A DNA stretch of 64,000 nt from Monocercomonoides exilis PA203 (taxonomy: Eukaryota; Protista; Preaxostyla). Below the pieces are notes generated by a model, which searched no databases, was not told where the DNA came from, and saw only the letters and a program-made list of their open reading frames with translations. The number at the start of each line of letters is the position of its first letter. Positions within the stretch are counted from its first letter, which is position 1. The stretch is from positions 992,001-1,056,000 of the forward strand of contig LSRY02000005.1 of assembly GCA_001643675.2 (NCBI GenBank). The letters are read 5' to 3'. The position numbers and the translations under genes are program-made. Shown in pieces: positions 32,122-48,741 of the stretch.

Positions 32122-35100
32122 ATGCCAAAGCAACAAAAAGAAAAGCATTGGAACACGCTTTCAGAGAAAAAAAAAGAGGATGAAGAGGAAATTGATGATG
32201 AAAATAGTTCAGAAGAATATTCTGAAGATGACGAGGAGTTAAACGATACGATCCCCACTGAAGTATGAACGAGATTTAATAAATGCAATTTTCTTTAACA
32301 ATTATTGCATTAATAAATTTATTTTCAAATTCTTTTCACAAGCGCACTGTTGCAAAAATACTTTTATCGCTTTCATCATTGGATGAACTTTCTGACGCAG
32401 TTGTTGATGCGATTCAGGATAGAATTGAAAGTGTTACGCCTCTGATTAAAAATTTGGGGGATGTTTCATCTGACCATCTTGCTCTCATAAGTGCTTTAAG
32501 GTTTATAGCAGAAGCCTTTTTTTGAGTTTTAATCTTTTAATTGAAGGGCCCTAACAACAAAATTTGGTGAGCAGTTATCCTGTGTAATTGTTGAAAGCAC
32601 ATTCCATCAAACATTGCTTTCTTTTTTGTTAACAGTTTGTTTATTAGTTTCTAATTTATGTTTATTAATCTTTCATTCTTGTTTCTGTGATCGAAGAATC
32701 TTCCACTTGCAAGACAATTATATTTAATGGTTGCGACTCAAAAAGAAGGGATTACCCAAGCAATAATTGAGCAAGGAAAATATTACCAGCAAATATTGGT
32801 TGATCTTTTATCAACTTTAGAAAACCTTAGCAAAAATTCAGATGACTTTACTGACGAATGTTTGAAAAATGAATCTCTGATAAACGAACTACTATTGAGT
32901 TTATACCCTGAGCGTGGCATTCCAAAGGAAATAACTCTCGCAACAGCAGAGCTTCTTTCAACGCTTACAGAGGACACTAAGGTTTGACGAATTTTGAGAT
33001 TTGATGTTTTTCGTCCTGTTAATAATGTGTGTTAATCATTTAATGCTTTGTTAAAAATATCTATTTTCTTTCTCTTCTAAAGATAACAACAAAGGACCAG
33101 ATAATGAGCGAGCTATACACCAGCCTCCCAAAGCAGCCGATGCGTGTGATTGTGGTGCTGTCTGGGTTTTTCCTCAACATCCGAGGGCGCTCGATGCTTC
33201 CCTTTGTGGCTGGCCCGCTTGTCACAGCGCTCTGCCCATTTCCTGCACCAGCGTCGCCTGCACAATTCGGTAGCATGTTGGGTTCTGTTGTGGCTGCCCT
33301 GAAGATGGTCATGAATGGCCTCTGGAGCAGATCAAGTCGGTCAAGCCAATCTGGCAGTGAGCACACGCCCTCCTCTCAGGCTGGCTCTGTGGCGCCTGTT
33401 GTGTTTGGAGTGAATGAAGGAGCAGCAAAAGACGAGTGGATCACAAAATATCCATTCAAATGCATACAATTCATGCCAGAGCCGCAGATTCCTGTTGAAA
33501 TTTCCCAGCCGGCTATGCCTCCAACAGCTCAATTGCCGTCTTCCTCAGCACTTTTGGCATCAACTGCTGCTTCGCCTGCTTTTGTGTCGCTGATCCCAGC
33601 TCTGAAGTATGCTCTTGCTGCAATCAGCGCATTCGTAGAAGCAATGGAGATATCTCACTCCGCCTGCGAAGTGCTGGCGAATGGCTGTCTGATAGAAAGC
33701 GACGAAGAAGAAGGAGAAGATGACGATGAAGATGAAGAAGAAGATGTTGATATGGGAAGTGGAATAGGAAGATCAGCAGGCTCTGGAATGAGCAGCATGT
33801 CATCTGGCCAATTGGGAGCTAAGCTGAGCGATGCAGAGCAAGCAGCAAAGGAAGAGAAAGAGAGAGAAGTCGATGCAAATGCCGCGAAAGCCATCATCAC
33901 ACACAAAATACCTGAAAAGCTGCTGGAGATCATCAACACCTCCATCACTAACACTCATTCTCCTTCTCCTTCTCCTTCTCCTTCTGCATCAACAGCCTCA
34001 ATTTCATCTTCATCTTCATTGCCAATGCAGATGCCTTCGCTGTCGTTGTTGTACAACGATCTCCTTCTTCTGACTCCTCTACTCGTCTCAGCACTCACAG
34101 ACGCTACGACAGCTGCGCCTGTGTCAGAGGCCGAGAAGAAAGCCGAGCAAAAAAGAAGAGAGAGGAAAGAGAAGAGAAGGAAGAGAAGAGAAGAGAAAGG
34201 GGGTGCAGCGATGGGCATGGAGCAGGACGCGGGGGAAGCGCTGGAGGAAGGCGAGGGGATGGCAGAAGACGACGACTCTTCGATGGAAGAGAGAGGGGGA
34301 GTGGGACAAGCACAGCGGCTTGTGTTTTCTGTTGAGAGCTGTCTGAACGACGAAGAAAAACAGCTTTCGATGAAGCTGCTGCAGTGTCTGGCAGATGAAA
34401 CACTGCAGAGCCAAGTCACGTCGCATCTGCCCCACAACATTAACACCCTCACAAACATTCTTTCTCTTCTTCTTTCCATTCAACTACCATCACCTGCTGC
34501 TGCTTCTTCTCTTTCTTCTTCTCCTTCTGCTGCTGCCCAATCGCCATACAGCCCAAGCGCCCTGGTTGCTTCAGGACTCGGCCCAGTTGCCTCGCAGCTG
34601 TGTCAGTCGTGTTCGCGAATGACTTTTTCTCTCCTCCACACCTTCTGCACGCACAACAACATCCCTCCCTTGGCTGCTGTTTCATCCGCACAGCCACTTG
34701 CATCAACAGGATTGAATGCATTTGTATCTGCTTCTATACCTGCTTCTGCATCTGCCACATCGTCTCCGCTGCTTCAGCAGGTCGTTGCGATGCTTTCAGC
34801 TTCTCCTGCAGCTGGTGCAACAGCAGTTACAACAACAGCAGCAGCACTGTCACCATCTCTTTCTGCTTCTTCAGCGTCTTCTCAACAATCCACCTCTGAA
34901 GTGTCGCTTGTGACCAATGACTCGATTGAGAGCTGCCTGCGGCTGTTTATCATTGCTGCCTCTACAATTTCTGATCTCTCTTCTCAGAACACCCCACAGC
35001 AGCCACACATCAACATGTCTCTGTTGCTTCCAGACATCACTCACATTGCTTTGCTCTTCTCGTTCTTCTTCAGACTTATCCACTACATTCTGCCTTCTTC

Positions 35101-35872
35101 TGCTGCTGATTCAACTTCTTCCTCATCTTCATCATCATCTTCTTCTTCTTCTTCTTTGAACTCAATTGTTGATGATGCTCTGATATCTTCCTCTTCATAT
35201 GCACAAAGCAGCGATGCCTCTGCAAGCGCTGTCATCGACCCCACAAACCTCAACCTTCTCTCCGCATTCCACTCCCTTCTCTCCATCGTCATATCTTCTC
35301 TCTATTCCACATTCACCTCTTCTCTCTCTCCGGCTCCTTCTCTTCCTTCTGCCTCTCTTTCAGCTTCTCCTTCATATCCCTCACAAAAGCCACTCATCAC
35401 CGTGCAATCGCTCCAAGGCACGCCCTTTTTGCTGTTCTACCAGCTGTTCTTTGAAGCTGAGCAGCTTCTTCTCAAAAGAGTCGGAGATGTTCTGCGGGTG
35501 TTTGTGTCATCGTCCACACTCGGCATCACCTTCACTGCGTCTGCGCTGTCCACGTCTGCACTCCCTGCCCTGCTTCATCTGGTCTCCTCTGGCTGTGACA
35601 GCGTCGGAGAGGCTCTTTCCCTTGTTGAGGCTGACAGCACTGCCACTAAACAGCTGGGTGCTGCCTGCTCAGCGCCGCTGCTGCCGCAGCTGGCGGAGAT
35701 ACAGGCGCTCCTGCAGCGGTCGAAGGGAGCTGTGAAGAAGAAGAAGAAGAGCGCGGGAAGAGGGCAGCAGATGGGAAGTGGGGATGGGTTTGGCGGGTTT
35801 AATAAAGAGAGCAGGATGTGCAGGAAGGATGTGGAAGATCTGATGAAGATGATTCAGATGATGGGGAAATGA
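32122..35872 (+). CDS. HEATR3/Syo1-like ARM/HEAT-repeat protein with long Ser/Ala-rich insertions
   Basis: Multi-exon 5' region starting MPKQQKEK. LATAELLSTLTED and ACEVLANGCLIESDEEEGEDDDEDEEED resemble the HEATR3/Syo1 TED motif and the helix before its acidic loop. Long final exon is ORF 33104-35872. Confidence 0.5.
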
Positions 35873-36088
35873 GATGGAGGAGAATGTGTTTGTGTATGTT
35901 TGTATGTGCTTTGATGGAAGAAAATGTCAAATTTCCGAATTTTGTGTTTGGAATGAAAAGTTTCTAAGGAAAGAAGTTACAAATATGTGCGTTTTTAACT
36001 TATGATAATAATCATTTTCACTTCGCTTTCACTTCCTGAATACAATCCATAATAAACTTTAAAATTCTTCGGATTGTTACACCAAAAA

Positions 36089-36907
36089 TAATTCTAATTC
36101 GAAAAAAAATAATTCAAATTCGAAAATTAATAATTCGAATTCGGAATTAATAATTCGAATTCGAAAAAAAATAATTCGATTTCGTAATTAATATTTCAAT
36201 TTCGAAAATTAATAATTTGAATTCGGAATTAATAATTCGAATTCGAAAAAAAATAATTCAATTTCGGAATTAATAATTCGAATTCGAAAAAAAATAATTC
36301 AAATTCGAAAATTAATAATTCGAATTCGGAATTAATAATTCGAATTCGAAAAAAATAATTCAAATTCGGAATTAATAATTCGAATTCGAAAAAAATAATT
36401 CAAATTCGAAAATTAATAATTCGAATTCGGAATTAATAATTCGAATTCGAAAAAAATAATTCAAATTCGAAAATTAATAATTCGAATTCGGAATTAATAA
36501 TTCGAATTCGAAAAAAATAATTCAAATTCGGAATTAATAATTCGAATTCGAAAAAAATAATTCAAATTCGAAAATTAATAATTCGAATTCGGAATTAATA
36601 ATTCGAATTCGAAAAAAATAATTCAAATTCGGAATTAATAATTCGAATTCGAAAAAAAATAATTCAAATTCGAAAATTAATAATTCGAATTCGGAATTAA
36701 TAATTCTAATTCGAAAAAAATAATTCAAATTCGAAAATTAATAATTCAAATTCGGAATTAATAATTCGAATTCGAAAAAAAATAATTCGATTTCGTAATT
36801 AATATTTCAATTTCGAAAATTAATAATTTGAATTCGGAATTAATAATTCGAATTCGTAATTTATTAATTCGATTTCGAAAAAGAATAATTCAATTTCGGA
36901 AATGAAT
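36089..36907. repeat. Minisatellite of 20-21 bp palindromic monomers (left arm of the foldback element)
   Basis: Monomers such as GAATTCGGAATTAATAATTC, GAATTCGAAAAAAATAATTC and AAATTCGAAAATTAATAATTC arranged in ~40- and ~61-bp higher-order units. Confidence 0.95.
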
Positions 36908-37421
36908 ATTTCAATTTCGAAATTCATTAAAAACGGAAATTTTTAATTTTTCTCGAGAATGGATTACAGAAAATTTCAAGATGTTTTTTAATCAATCAAA
37001 TATTATTCCTCAAATAACTGTTTTTTTTCAATAGTAATATGAATCTTATCAATTTTTAGAAATTTTTTTTCATTTTAGAAAATCATCACTGAAATGACAG
37101 AAATTTCAAAAAAATTCATTCTATTGAATTTCGAAATAAAATTAAAAAAAAAATTATCACGATTATTGAATTATTTCTTCACAATAATGTGATTGTTTCA
37201 TTGGCAAAATTTTGGATAATATCGGTTTTAAACATGAAAATGTATTTATTTCGTTTTCAAATTAACTTCAATCAATAAATCTTCATTCAAAATGAAAGAA
37301 AATTTTTTTATGAAAATGCATCATTTTTCTAATATTGATAAACAAAATATACTGATGAGATAAAAATTGAAAGAATTTAAAACCCCAAACACAAGTTATT
37401 CATTCCACAAATCAAAAAAAC

Positions 37422-37699
37422 ATTCATTTTCGAAATTGAATTATTCTTTTTCGAAATCGAATTAATAAATTACGAAATTGAATTATTAATTCCGAATTTG
37501 AATTATTTTTTTTCGATTTTGAATTATTAATTCCGAATTTGAATTATTTTTTTTCGATTTTGAATTATTAATTCCGAAATCGAATTATTTTTTTTCGAAT
37601 TCGAATTATTAATTCCGAATTTGAATTATTAATTTTCGAAATTGAAATATTAATTACGAAATTGAATTATTCTTTTTCGAATTTGAATTATTTTTGGTG
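37422..37699. repeat. Inverted, shorter copy of the same minisatellite (right arm)
   Basis: Reverse-complement monomers (GAATTATTAATTCCGAATT, GAATTATTTTTTTTCG). Confidence 0.9.
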
Positions 37700-37898
37700 T
37701 ATTTCATTTAAAAAATAAAAAATTGAAAATTTTTAAAATAAATAAAGGAATAAATATACAAACAAATAAAGATGAGATGGAAAGAATGTGAAATGTGAAT
37801 AAAGAAGAAGAAGAAATGAATTGTTAATTTAAAAAAAGCATTTTTCCAGCACAATTTATTTAAAAAAAATGAAAAATTGTAATTCTTTTAATCTTTTC

Positions 37899-39856
37899 TC
37901 ACTTAATTTCGTCATCGTCTTCTTCTATACGATCCTTAGAATCTTCCATCGAAACCACACAAAAGTCCATTTCTTTCTCATTTTTCTTCTTTTTCCCTCC
38001 AAAACTCATCAAGTCATCATCTTCTTCTTTTTCTCCTTCATCCTCCTCCTCCTCCTCTTCTTCTTCTTCTTCTCCCCTTCCAGCAGCTGATCTGCTTCTT
38101 ACCCCAACTTTGCCCACTTCACTCAGCTTCTTCTCGATTATTCTCTTCCAAATCGGATCGCGAATCAGAATGCGGTAGCGGTCTTTGAGCTGTGCGTCTG
38201 TCTTGCCCAAGTCAATCGTCTCATCTTTTGCTATCGCTGCCCAGCGTGTCCCGTGTTTGGAGATTCCTCGCAGAAGCAGCTTGTCTTCAACAGGCGTCCA
38301 GCGCTGTTTGTGAGAAAACATAAAAAATTTTTTATGATTGAAAAATTTGGAAATATTTTTAATAGAATTAATTAAAAAAATTTGTATATAATTTTAAAAA
38401 AGATCAGATGCAATGAACATTAAACTGAAAATTCATTTGAATTTCATTCATACTTTGCGATGTTCCACCTTTTCTTTGTTCCTTCCAGTCAACTTTTTTT
38501 CTGGAATCAATGTTTGAGGCATCTGCGAAACTGAAGAAAGAATTAAAATTTTAAAGAAATTAATATGTTTCAAATAATTACAGTTCAAAAATGTCAAAGA
38601 ATCGCAAATCCAAAATAAAGAAGATTATGTAATACAATCAAAATAATGGAGTATTTGGGTTTCAAACCTTTGACCATCGCGTTTTGCAGCGGTCCATCAA
38701 TGTCAAAATCAAAGTCAAATTCAAATTCGCTTTGTTTCTTTTCATTTTTTGGTTCTTGTTTGGTTTTTTCGTTTTCAGTTGTATTGCTTTGTTCCTTTCG
38801 GACTTTCTTTTCATCAGAATGTCTTTCCTTTTCTTTTTCTTTTTCTTTTTCTTTGATTTTGTTTATCTTTCTTTCTTTTTCTTTTTCGTTAATTTTTTCT
38901 ATTTTTCTTTCTTTTTCTTTTTCATTCATTCTGTTTCTATTAATTTCTCTTTCTTTTTCCTTTTCTCTTTGTGCACGCATCAACATTTCTTTGTTTATTC
39001 TTTGCTCTCTTTCTTTTCTAATGTTGTCTATCGGTTTTCGTCCATAGTACTTCATTGCCTGTATCCTCTCCTGTTTACTTACTAAATAAGGTTTAAATGT
39101 TTCCCCTTCAAATAGCTTTTGTGTTTCTTCCATTTTTTGAATCCAGTTATCTTCCTGTTCATCTTCTTTTTTATCATCTTTCATTTTATTGTCATCAGAC
39201 GAAGATTCTTCTTCTGAAACTCTCATTCTCTTTCTTGACTCAAAAGTTTTATTGCGTTTGTGATCTTTCTTTTGGCTTTGGATGGAAGCCTTTGTTAATT
39301 CAGACGAAAGAGACAAATCCGTTTCATCTTCGTATAAGCTTTCATCTGTAACAGATTCCTGATCTTCTTTTGAACTTTCGCTATCGTGATCATTTTCCTC
39401 ATCAATCAAAATTACTGAACGATCTGAAGAAGGGAATGATTGGCTTTTCCGAGTTTTCATATTGCTTTTAATTTGCTGTTGTTGTTTCACTTCTCTTGGA
39501 GTTGAGCTATTTGCACTTCTGTTTTGCAACTGTTCATTGTTGATTTTTGGTTGTTCAGAAACGGAAATGTCTTGGTGAACTTTTGGAGAACAAAGATTCG
39601 ATAATTCATCTCGATTTCTTTTTGCTTTTTCAGCTTGCATATCAGCAACGAGTATCTTATTTTCTTTGCTGTTTTCCAAAGTTGCTTGAAGATCTTCCTC
39701 GAGTTCGTTTAATATTGATTCGTCAATCATGATGGTTTCATTGTTCATCAGTTGCTCATCTTCTTTTGATTCTGATTTTTCTTCCACTTTTTCATTTAAT
39801 GTGGTTTCATCAACTTCTTCAATTTTTGACTTTCTTGTTTTTTTAGATTTTGGCAT
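37899..39856 (-). CDS. Telobox-type Myb protein (TRF-like) with long charged low-complexity N-terminus
   Basis: Large first exon (ORF 38594-39856, spliced near 38650), small middle exon about 38455-38530, and last exon RWTPVEDKLLLRGISKHGTRWAAIAKDETIDLGKTDAQLKDRYRIL. LKDRYR matches the telobox LKDKWRN motif of TRF1/2-type single-Myb proteins. Confidence 0.7.
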
Positions 39857-46425: not shown

Positions 46426-46490
46426 TACACCAAAAATATTTCAATTTCGAAAAAAAAAATGGATTTCGGAAATAATTATTCGAATTCATA
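46426..46490 (+). mobile_element. Degenerate terminus of the same foldback family
   Basis: TA|CACCAAAAATATTTCAATTTCGAAAAAA...ATTTCGGAAATAATTATTCGAATTC reproduces the 36078 terminus and a few decayed monomers. Confidence 0.5.
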
Positions 46491-48741
46491 TATGTCAAAA
46501 TTTTTTTGAAAAGTTCCTTTTTTTTATTTTCAAATAAAATAAAAATTTCATATTTCAATCAAATTTCTGTTTTCACTTACCATAATTCTTTGCCATGTAA
46601 ACAAAATCTTTGCAACGTTATAATTGACACACTGGTAAAAGTTGGTGAGTGGGAATAGAAATTTGATTAAAATATTTCATATTCATTTTCACCTGAGAAT
46701 TAAACAAAAGGAACTTTTCAAAAAAATTTTGCCATATTTTCGTTTTTCTTTTCATTCGGAAAAAAAATGTGTCGTCACATTCCAGAACAGATGTGTGACT
46801 ATTTTTGAAATCAGACTTTTTCTGTGAACAATTTCGGTATGAAAAAAAGCGAATAATGTTTTTTATGAATGCTGAAAAGTGGAAAAACAATAAAATAGAT
46901 TATTGTGTATTGTTTTTTTTTAAAAATCAGCGTTTGTCACAATTGAAAAGCATCCCTCTGTGACATGACAAGTTCGAAAAACATTTGTCTGTAACAAAAA
47001 AAAATGGTTTTATATTAAATAAAAACAAAATGATTGAAATAATAGCAAAAACTTTAAGAAAAATTATAAAGAGCTATGGTAAATATTTATTGATTTCATC
47101 TGAAATATCTGTCTTTTTTATCTTTTGTCAGTGACGGTCAATGACAAATTATGACAAAAAATTCCTCAACTGACATTTTTTTGTCAAAATAAAAAAAAAA
47201 TTGGGAACTTAATACATAAATAAAAATTTCTATTTTTTCAAGGGAATAAGTATTATTGATAAAGATTTTCAAATTAATTATTATTGCAATTAAGAATTAT
47301 GAAATCGGTTGAAATAACCATTTTTGACAAATCATAAATGTCGCGTCAGTCATAATGTCATCGTTTTAATTTTCTTTTGTTATATCACAGAGGAATATTG
47401 ATAAGCGTGAAACATTAGAATTGAAACTTTTGATCAAATGGCAGAAAACCAAGAAATCATTTACACTCCGAAAAAAATTAAGAACACGAAAATAATCTCA
47501 CAAATTAAACCTTGTTTGATAATTTTTGGTGATTAATTCATGACATTTCTCCACAATGCACATATCATCGAATCAAAAAGGTTTGTTTATTCTGATTTGC
47601 ATTGTGTTATTATTTGACGGATTAAAAGCAAATATTACAAAATGAAATTTAGTTTAATTTAACACGGATGTTAATCATTTGCGACTTTTCAAAAAGAATA
47701 ACTGATTTTAGTTCATACTCACAAAAATTAACATGAAAGGATATAAATATTCACAAATGTCATCATTTCTTTGAAATTAACATTCAAGAAAAACATGGTG
47801 AGAATTAACTGAAACAAAATCAGAATTCACGATTAAATTTTTCTAAATAGAAATTTTTCTTAAAGTTTCTACAAATATTTGTTTCTTAATATCAAGCTAT
47901 TTTTGAAAAGAAATTGAAAAGTTGATTGTTTCTCTTATTACCAGTCATCTTGATGAATAAATTAATTAATTTTTTTACCACAAATTATAAAAATTGTTTT
48001 CATCAAAACAAACAACTTTTTTGTTTTAGGATTTTTCAAAATAAGCAAATCTTTAAAAGACTGATGGTGTTTTTATTCAGTTATTCGCTTTCAAAAACTT
48101 ATATTTATAACAACGAAAAATAACAAACTCAAAAGAAACAAATTTTAATGATTAAAAATCAATGGTGTTTGAAAAATAAGATTATAAAGAATATCAGAGA
48201 TATCGTGCACAAATGAAAAAATTCAACATTTTGGAATTACACATATGAATGGAAAAGCAGAACAAAAAAGAGATAATAAGAGGAAATTCTCACAAAGTGG
48301 TGCTTTTAACAGGTGATGATATATAAAACAAAAAAGAAAAATCTTATAAAATAACAATGGATGAAGCAAAAAAACTTTAAATGTGCTTTAAAGCACAATT
48401 AACATAAAACTTGAAAATTGAATACACAGAAGAATATTCGACTCATTATAATTGATTTGCAATAACAGAAAACGTGAAATGTAAATGTTTGAATGAATTA
48501 AAAAGTCAATAAAAAGATATAAATATTTGAACAACAAGTATTGGCGATACTCAAACCACGCACAATACATTTTCTAATACAGACTAATTCATTTTATCGA
48601 TTTCCCACACAAACTCCTTCAGCCAGGACAACTCTTCAATTTCAATTTTCATATCCCCAATTCGCGGTTCCCCAACAAACTCTTCTTCCCATCGCACACA
48701 TTCTCTTTCCAGGCAGCCACCTCCCATCCCACTCCACTTCT

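Follow-up and report, generated by a model that had tools for sequence, protein, structure and literature searches.

A foldback-type mobile element with repeat-built arms in Monocercomonoides exilis and its probable Tc1/IS630-type transposase

A gene-less, TA-flanked element between two convergent genes

We analysed a 64,000-bp stretch of the genome of Monocercomonoides exilis (hereafter the window, whose positions are used throughout unless a contig or locus is named), in which two genes converge on a gap of 2 kb. The upstream gene is a 922-amino-acid open reading frame (ORF) on the plus strand (33104–35872) that matched no Pfam family, and the downstream gene is a 140-amino-acid ORF on the minus strand (37899–38321) that encodes a Myb domain (PF00249, E = 2.6e-12). 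Their stop codons lie 208 bp before and 198 bp after a 1.6-kb sequence that occupies most of the gap. This sequence (36080–37699, or C47:1,028,080–1,029,699 in the genome, the flanking TAs excluded) is a real mobile element that carries no genes. It is bounded by two copies of a TA target-site duplication (36078–36079 and 37700–37701) and by two 15-base tips, the right one (37685–37699, minus strand) being the exact reverse complement of the left one (36080–36094, plus strand). A 17-base query composed of the TA and the tip matched both ends of the element, compared with a chance expectation of 0.02 matches per window. The same query has one further match in the window, with one mismatch, at 46426.

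Between the tips we distinguish a left arm (36095–36928, plus strand), a non-coding core (36929–37420) and an inverted right arm (37421–37684, minus strand). The core is 492 bp of unique, AT-rich DNA that is conserved in the family described below, and neither the core nor the element interior as a whole contains an ORF longer than 64 amino acids. A search of the element found no tRNA, and its Rfam matches, all of which are located in the arms, fall far under the gathering scores.

Both arms are tandem arrays. Tandem Repeats Finder detected an array with periods of 20, 41 and 61 bp on the left (36087–36924) and one with a period of 41 bp on the right (37427–37692). With the conserved 3′ box taken as the boundary between units, the left arm (about 849 bp) resolved into the tip and 41 monomers, and the right arm (about 279 bp) into the tip and 13 monomers, counts that may be off by a few units given the nanopore-based assembly. 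All monomers are 20 or 21 bp long; they begin with a conserved xAxTTCG and finish with AATAATTC, and the stretch between the two is variable. As the tip is made of CACC and the 3′ 11 bases of a monomer, the array reaches to 4 bases from the end of the element; each end is therefore CACC followed directly by head-to-tail 20/21-bp monomers. Both the outermost and the innermost units correspond between the arms, with left monomers 38–41 resembling right monomers 11–13, and the inner arm ends form an inverted pair (I3; 36695–36911 and 37418–37634) that is 88% complementary, as is the pair formed by the outer arm ends (I2). The surplus of roughly 560 bp in the left arm corresponds to monomers 10–33, which are exact copies of two- and three-monomer units, and it looks like a local expansion.

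The element is also dense in short palindromes. It contains 21 of the 44 GAATTC sites and 49 of the 76 TTCGAA sites in the window, together with all 19 window copies of the 10-bp palindrome AATTCGAATT, which are located at monomer junctions. The monomers are self-complementary at 14 of their 20–21 positions. An earlier note on this DNA, made from its letters alone, had described matching TA-bounded termini, unequal arms of about 830 and 280 bp with matching inner ends, a non-coding core, insertion between convergent genes and monomers dense in GAATTC and TTCGAA, and the features and arm lengths given above bear out each of these points. Its description of the monomers as palindromic needs to be narrowed: they are palindromic only in part, and the true palindrome is the 10-bp sequence at their junctions.

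A family of about 300 copies with variable arms

We searched the 82.3-Mb genome (101 contigs) with the 15-base tip, allowing at most one mismatch, and obtained 328 forward and 339 reverse matches (667 in total), whereas the reversed tip, used as a control, gave 6 forward and 7 reverse matches (13 in total). The tip matches often form plus/minus pairs 0.4–1.5 kb apart, and we estimate that the family comprises about 300 copies, with arrays additional to these; the census is based on 65 loci together with coordinate-only searches. In the loci that we read, TA lies just outside 56 of 60 distinct tips, compared with a background TA frequency of 8.7% in the same flanks, and 18 of 19 distinct complete elements have TA on both sides. 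The target sequence beyond the TA is enriched in A at positions −3 to −8 and in T at positions −10 to −12, an AT-rich palindromic context when it is read from both ends.

The 492-bp core has at least 40 matches in the genome, at 78–92% identity, and the closest relative of the window copy is 92% identical. Pairwise identities between cores range from 68 to 95%, with a median of 79%, which indicates that the family is old and diversified; at this age, current activity is doubtful. The arms are far less constant in length. Around one shared core they measure 27 to 845 bp when tip and core coordinates are combined, and in the sampled loci an arm contains 0 to 48 monomers. The copies share their consensus monomers. 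Total lengths are 0.57–1.6 kb, with one case of 13 kb, and sharp ends are kept even by some nearly armless copies whose full length is 573 bp. The termini thus recur throughout the genome with sharp TA-bounded ends, and the arms are modular and variable in length, both as the earlier note had anticipated.

To look for insertion sites without the element, we joined the flanks of elements by script and searched the resulting sequences against the sampled loci, which returned two junction-spanning matches. The flanks of a 4,952-bp transposase-bearing element (L057:2659–7610; the second of the contig C16 elements described below) are contiguous in a paralogous repeat (L013, 76% identity), and those of a 748-bp copy (L018:1501–2248) are contiguous in its paralogue L017 (78% identity). 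At 76–78% identity, these paralogous empty sites place the junction to within 1–2 bases. L017 has an independent insertion of its own about 50 bp away. For the window copy, the assembly contains no paralogous empty site: the left flank (35650–36079) matches only itself, and the right flank has only its self-match at the junction, its other matches being codon-repeat low complexity in the Myb gene. The earlier note had proposed a search for empty sites with a single TA; contiguous flanks were found in paralogues of two other copies, but not for the window copy in this assembly.

Autonomous relatives encode a DD34E transposase

A genome scan with the Pfam DDE_3 profile yielded 108 matches, and the best six all have a tip of this family about 1 kb away. 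Three complete transposase-bearing elements, all TA-flanked, could be delimited: an 8,498-bp element with 8 and 17 monomers in its arms and an uninterrupted ORF of 530 amino acids (C91:1632945–1641442), and two elements of 5,191 bp (C16:240604–245794; 15 and 18 monomers) and 4,952 bp (C16:557658–562609; 6 and 15 monomers) whose monomers belong to a different 21-bp type. Arms of autonomous copies therefore contain 6–18 monomers. The C91 element has a tip identical to that of the window copy and monomers exactly of the window type. In the C16 sister lineage the 15-base tip is identical as well and the transposase is intact, but the monomer is different; the transposases of the two lineages are 59–60% identical. 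A further copy, on contig C7, is 92% identical to the C91 element at the DNA level and shares its monomer type, unlike the C16 elements, and the only break in its ORF comes from an additional A in a run of eight.

The transposase matches DDE_3 at 2.6e-22. An alignment with 17 homologues shows little or no variation at D257, D341 and E376. The second aspartate and the glutamate are separated by 34 residues, which is the spacing found in Tc1/IS630 transposases. A search of solved structures with the single sequence gave no match, and only the alignment profile reached the Mos1 transposase (4.8e-9) and the catalytic domain of Sleeping Beauty (SB100X; 9.2e-8). Profile positions 78–184 match the paired domains of Pax6, Pax5 and Pax8 (E values of 7e-7 to 9e-6), and they also match the DNA-binding subdomains of Sleeping Beauty. 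By sequence comparison, then, the family combines a TA target, a DD34E-type enzyme, a paired-like region and ends in common with an autonomous copy, as would be expected of the Tc1/mariner superfamily, and its enzyme and target place it in the Tc1/IS630 branch; the DD34E assignment concerns the autonomous partner, as the window copy encodes nothing. The earlier note had taken the TA duplication as pointing to a Tc1/mariner-class enzyme and had suggested looking for copies that encode a transposase. The C91 and C16 elements, which have the same tips, are such copies, and the partner enzyme is of the DD34E Tc1/IS630 type.

Other origins and partners were considered and rejected. When the core was compared with the interiors of the C91, C16 and C7 elements by sensitive BLAST, only arm monomers matched, and we therefore do not regard the core as a deletion derivative of an autonomous element. 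Since the core is unlike the autonomous interior, it is through the arms and tips only that the window copy is linked to this transposase. Many pairs of MITE and transposase share only their ends. An abundant family of 424-amino-acid Tc1-like proteins was dismissed as the partner because its loci are without the family tip, and so were mariner-type (PF01359) transposases, for which we found four weak matches, none with the tip at one mismatch or fewer. One PF01359 locus (L054) carries a look-alike of the tip with two mismatches.

The same design in other taxa

A homologue from Blattamonas nauphoetae, with a transposase 40% identical, lies within a 2,306-bp element (L066:6598–8903) that begins with CAG after a TA and ends with CTG before a TA. 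Each of its arms is a 9-base tip followed by 11 monomers that alternate between 21 and 20 bp. Complementarity between the two arms is 97%, and their monomers bear no sequence relationship to those of M. exilis. This element sits in the arm of another copy, and the string that is left when the element and one TA are subtracted recurs exactly, 34 bp further along in the host arm. The exact single-TA empty-site string shows that the TA duplication is precise in this relative. On a metagenomic contig (L068), a 50%-identical transposase is accompanied by nine 20/21-bp monomers, then a tip and then TA, and this tip shares 12 of its 15 bases with that of M. exilis. A Streblomastix homologue showed no clear monomer array on its one short contig of 3.7 kb. 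Different transposase lineages have different monomer sequences, which is true of the species compared and also of the C16 and C91 elements of M. exilis. The presence of the design in the Blattamonas and metagenomic homologues indicates that repeat-built ends are an inherited trait of this transposase clade.

Arm expansion and hairpin potential

When the expansion in the left arm was used as a genome query, it led to a copy on contig C21. Its left tip, at 1073046, is exact and is followed by arm matches on the same strand that are contiguous to 1080980 and resume from 1084711 to 1085706, then by the family core at 1085701–1086195 and a normal right arm of about 310 bp. On the basis of these coordinates, its left arm is at least 8 kb, and possibly 12.6 kb, in length. 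This copy bears out the proposal in the earlier note that the element could seed satellite arrays. The family offers a natural series from near-armless MITEs to an arm of more than 8 kb, and it illustrates how satellites may originate from transposon ends.

The predicted single-stranded DNA fold of the inner kilobase of the window copy pairs the two arms, with a minimum free energy of −235 kcal/mol compared with −131 ± 7 kcal/mol for shuffled sequences (z = −14.7). By this prediction the hairpin potential is strong, in agreement with the cruciform-forming potential that had been suggested. Variable arms composed of short tandem sub-repeats and a predicted long hairpin give the element the structure of a foldback transposon. 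Hairpin-forming copies between convergent genes could yield double-stranded RNA or trigger rearrangements.

A model for the family and its alternatives

Taken together, these data support the earlier interpretation of the element overall. We consider it highly probable that 36080–37699 belongs to a Tc1/IS630 (DD34E) family as a non-autonomous copy of the foldback type, which inserted at a TA between the convergent genes, was mobilised through a transposase that binds the monomers and has arms that drift in length. According to this model, a transposase of the C91 type, or a close relative, would recognise the monomers as iterated binding sites. Each monomer has two conserved boxes separated by about one helical turn, a spacing that a bipartite PAI-RED domain could accommodate. 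After pairing the ends, the enzyme would cut at the CACC tips, and the excised element would re-insert at a TA, which would be duplicated. Both the binding of the monomers and the movement of the window element by this enzyme are what we infer from sequence relationships. The number of monomers would change in place, by unequal exchange or replication slippage, and such changes could explain the 41 versus 13 monomers of the window copy, the spread of arm lengths between 27 bp and over 8 kb and the growth of satellite-like arrays. Judging from its divergence from other copies, the window copy is probably an old and now static insertion that would still be able to form a long hairpin or cruciform.

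Instead of being transposase-binding sites, the arrays may be a neutral by-product of slippage in partly palindromic, AT-rich ends of which the outermost tip alone is recognised, and this we regard as possible but somewhat doubtful. The range of 0 to 48 monomers per arm, with more than 8 kb in one case, implies that a high number is not required; almost armless copies keep sharp ends; and the repeats that make up the left-arm expansion are exact, the pattern that recent slippage would leave. Against this, the same order of tip and then 20/21-bp monomers is found in both arms around transposases that are 40–60% identical, in three taxa with differing monomer sequences, and arrays have been retained in every autonomous copy. 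Within a single genome, moreover, the monomers differ by transposase lineage while the tip is constant, and a period of about two helical turns would suit a bipartite paired-like domain. It is also conceivable, if unlikely, that the element was mobilised by, or descends from, the C16 sister lineage or some other transposase rather than one of the C91 type. Among Tc1/mariner MITEs, shared tips commonly allow mobilisation by the transposase of another element, and the C16 lineage has both the identical tip and an intact transposase, but the window monomers are of the C91/C7 type and not of the C16 type.

Two further alternatives concern the reality of the element. The right arm, or the arm lengths, might have been created by the assembly, which is nanopore-based (PMC8767320), contains 100%-identical inverted duplications that are possibly artefacts and has a homopolymer-length difference that disrupts one transposase copy. 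We consider such an origin very improbable, as the arms of the window copy are 88% rather than 100% complementary and differ in monomer order, and as the two-armed layout is present in dozens of independent copies and in another species and a metagenome that were assembled separately. Scarcely any weight can be given to the idea that the locus is an immobile local satellite or minisatellite with inverted ends that arose by chance. About 70% of the element is tandem repeat, which RepeatMasker-type tools would call low complexity; a satellite of this kind is nevertheless contradicted by 667 tips compared with 13 for the control, by a unique core conserved in at least 40 copies and by a transposase-encoding partner, and sharp TA boundaries next to unrelated flanks and flanks of other copies that are contiguous in paralogues also speak against it.

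Beyond the window copy, the monomer-binding model leads to a wider proposition, for and against which we find the arguments about equally balanced. Oxymonads may carry an undescribed DD34E Tc1/IS630 clade whose ends have, instead of the customary two or three binding sites, a helically phased series of 20/21-bp units that start 4–9 bases from the cut and co-evolve with the transposase. The number of units would drift from one to hundreds, so that the same ends would serve as transposon termini, hairpin palindromes and a source of satellites. If this is true, the presence of an autonomous copy makes the family a foldback system that is open to direct tests of what repeat-built arms do.

Relation to known transposons

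The window element is both real and well explained, and it belongs to an oxymonad Tc1/IS630 clade with foldback-type ends for which autonomous copies are in hand. Foldback elements are usually found without their transposase, and for that reason the role of their repeat-built arms has been conjectural. In this family, three apparently intact transposase genes lie within repeat-armed elements and the design is kept across genera, which makes binding and transposition assays feasible. The M. exilis genome paper gives class totals only, with 3.7 Mb of DNA transposons and 28.9 Mb of unclassified repeats, the latter about 35% of the assembly (PMC8767320). We found no description of the family in the papers that we searched, and it is probably undescribed, as the earlier note had supposed. 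Its roughly 300 copies and its arrays can now be annotated and linked to their transposase.

In structure, the family resembles the Drosophila elements Foldback (FB), Tetris and Galileo, which likewise have long, asymmetric, length-variable inverted arms of tandem sub-repeats, a small non-coding middle and mostly defective copies. Those elements generate duplications of 7–10 bp, and the tandem repeats of Galileo carry additional transposase-binding sites (PMC4079207, PMC3688188, PMC3573991). FB and Tetris belong to the Mutator superfamily, with 8–10-bp duplications, and Galileo to the P superfamily (PMC4079207), whereas the M. exilis family has a TA duplication and a DD34E Tc1/IS630 transposase. 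The arms of Tetris are similarly able to grow into satellite-like arrays, but its monomers are about 220 bp long, compared with 20/21 bp here, and no autonomous copy has been found for Tetris, in contrast to the M. exilis family. The term foldback-type used in the earlier note is thus apt as a structural label but does not extend to the Drosophila FB/Tetris lineage, as neither the 8–10-bp duplication nor the Mutator-type transposase of that lineage is found here.

The nearest functional analogue of the family is the IR-DR group of Tc1 elements, which includes Sleeping Beauty, Bari, Minos, Paris and S (PMC4120734, PMC5224488). Each end in this group is about 250 bp long and contains two or three direct repeats that are separated from one another (PMC4120734). 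The two share a DD34E-type transposase, a paired-like region, a TA target and long inverted ends with repeats, which in IR-DR elements bind the transposase. The M. exilis family does not have IR-DR ends of about 250 bp with separated repeats: its arrays are contiguous, with 20/21-bp units running head to tail from a point 4 bases away from the cut site, and the number of units, from 0 to 48 and far more once, varies between copies and between the arms of one copy.

Within the wider Tc/mariner group, a fold-back element is already represented by Tc4 of Caenorhabditis elegans (Yuan et al. 1991, as cited in PMC11071193). Tc4 elements have a DDD triad, a CTNAG target and a TNA duplication (PMC11071193), in contrast to the DD34E triad and TA duplication of the M. 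exilis family, which therefore lies outside the Tc4 group. The non-coding copies are also similar to Stowaway-like and other Tc1/mariner MITEs in that they are TA-flanked, number in the hundreds, lie near genes and have only their ends in common with the autonomous element (PMC3814204). Typical MITEs, however, are short elements with simple inverted ends of tens of bases, whereas the copies described here are longer and the arms of this family are modular and built from repeats.

Solo end and neighbouring repeats

The window holds a further piece of the Tc1/IS630 foldback family, a solo left end at window positions 46426-46490, which we recognized by a TA followed by the family tip (one mismatch) and then two or three decayed monomers. 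This solo end directly abuts a repeat of another, also palindromic, family (window ~46490-46745), which has matches in both orientations at loci L006, L002 and L060. A further tip-like string at window 47517-47531, which is followed by AT, is probably a chance occurrence.

Elsewhere in the genome, many family copies adjoin a second abundant palindromic repeat of ~300 bp, which matches itself in both orientations and was found in the flanks of the copies at L003, L025, L020, L002 and L015. This frequent adjacency suggests repeat-rich islands in which MITEs nest.

Duplicated and composite copies

Two inverted duplications, each with 100%-identical units, span either an entire copy of the family or one half of a copy, together with its flanks. 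At L064, the repeated units are 2407 nt long and separated by a spacer of 157 nt (G000:C42:196860-199266 and 199424-201830); at L062, they are 1368 nt long with a spacer of 2859 nt (G000:C25:2122187-2123554 and 2126414-2127781). Either these palindromes were duplicated very recently, or the assembly of the nanopore reads created them artificially. We also found a 3.4-kb, TA-flanked composite family element (L065:188-3554, equivalent to G000:C47:107687-111053), which has arms of 48 and 22 monomers and contains two near-identical cores in opposite orientation. Two family copies may have joined head to head as a dimer, or a single copy may have undergone an internal inverted duplication.

Transposase-bearing copies

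The transposase copy on contig C7 (L058:6252-7845) is 92% identical to the C91 copy at the DNA level but is split into two overlapping ORFs by the insertion of a single A into an A8 run. The additional A could be a genuine frameshift or a homopolymer error left in the assembly. Because the transposase ORFs on C91 and C16 are single and intact, a programmed -1 frameshift is unlikely to be required in this family. The expected place of the left part of this copy is occupied by a pogo-like element (L058:3700-5756), which has 42-nt inverted ends and a 403-aa DDE_1 ORF. A second copy of the pogo-like element, with 87% identity, contains the left flank of the family copy at L010.

The autonomous elements on C16 and C91 carry 2.5-5 kb of additional DNA that includes three ORFs: one of 458 aa in the C16 element (L056:3558-4934) and two, of 157 and 221 aa, in the C91 element (L055:951-1424 and 2086-2751). 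None of the three ORFs matched a Pfam family. One half of the 458-aa ORF is Ser/Pro-rich, and its C terminus is Cys/Gly-rich and repeat-like. These sequences could represent cargo, fragments captured from the host, or nested debris.

The transposase homologues of Streblomastix strix (P0011 and P0016) are ~800 aa long and have a DDE_3 domain fused to a C-terminal OTU (deubiquitinase-like) domain.
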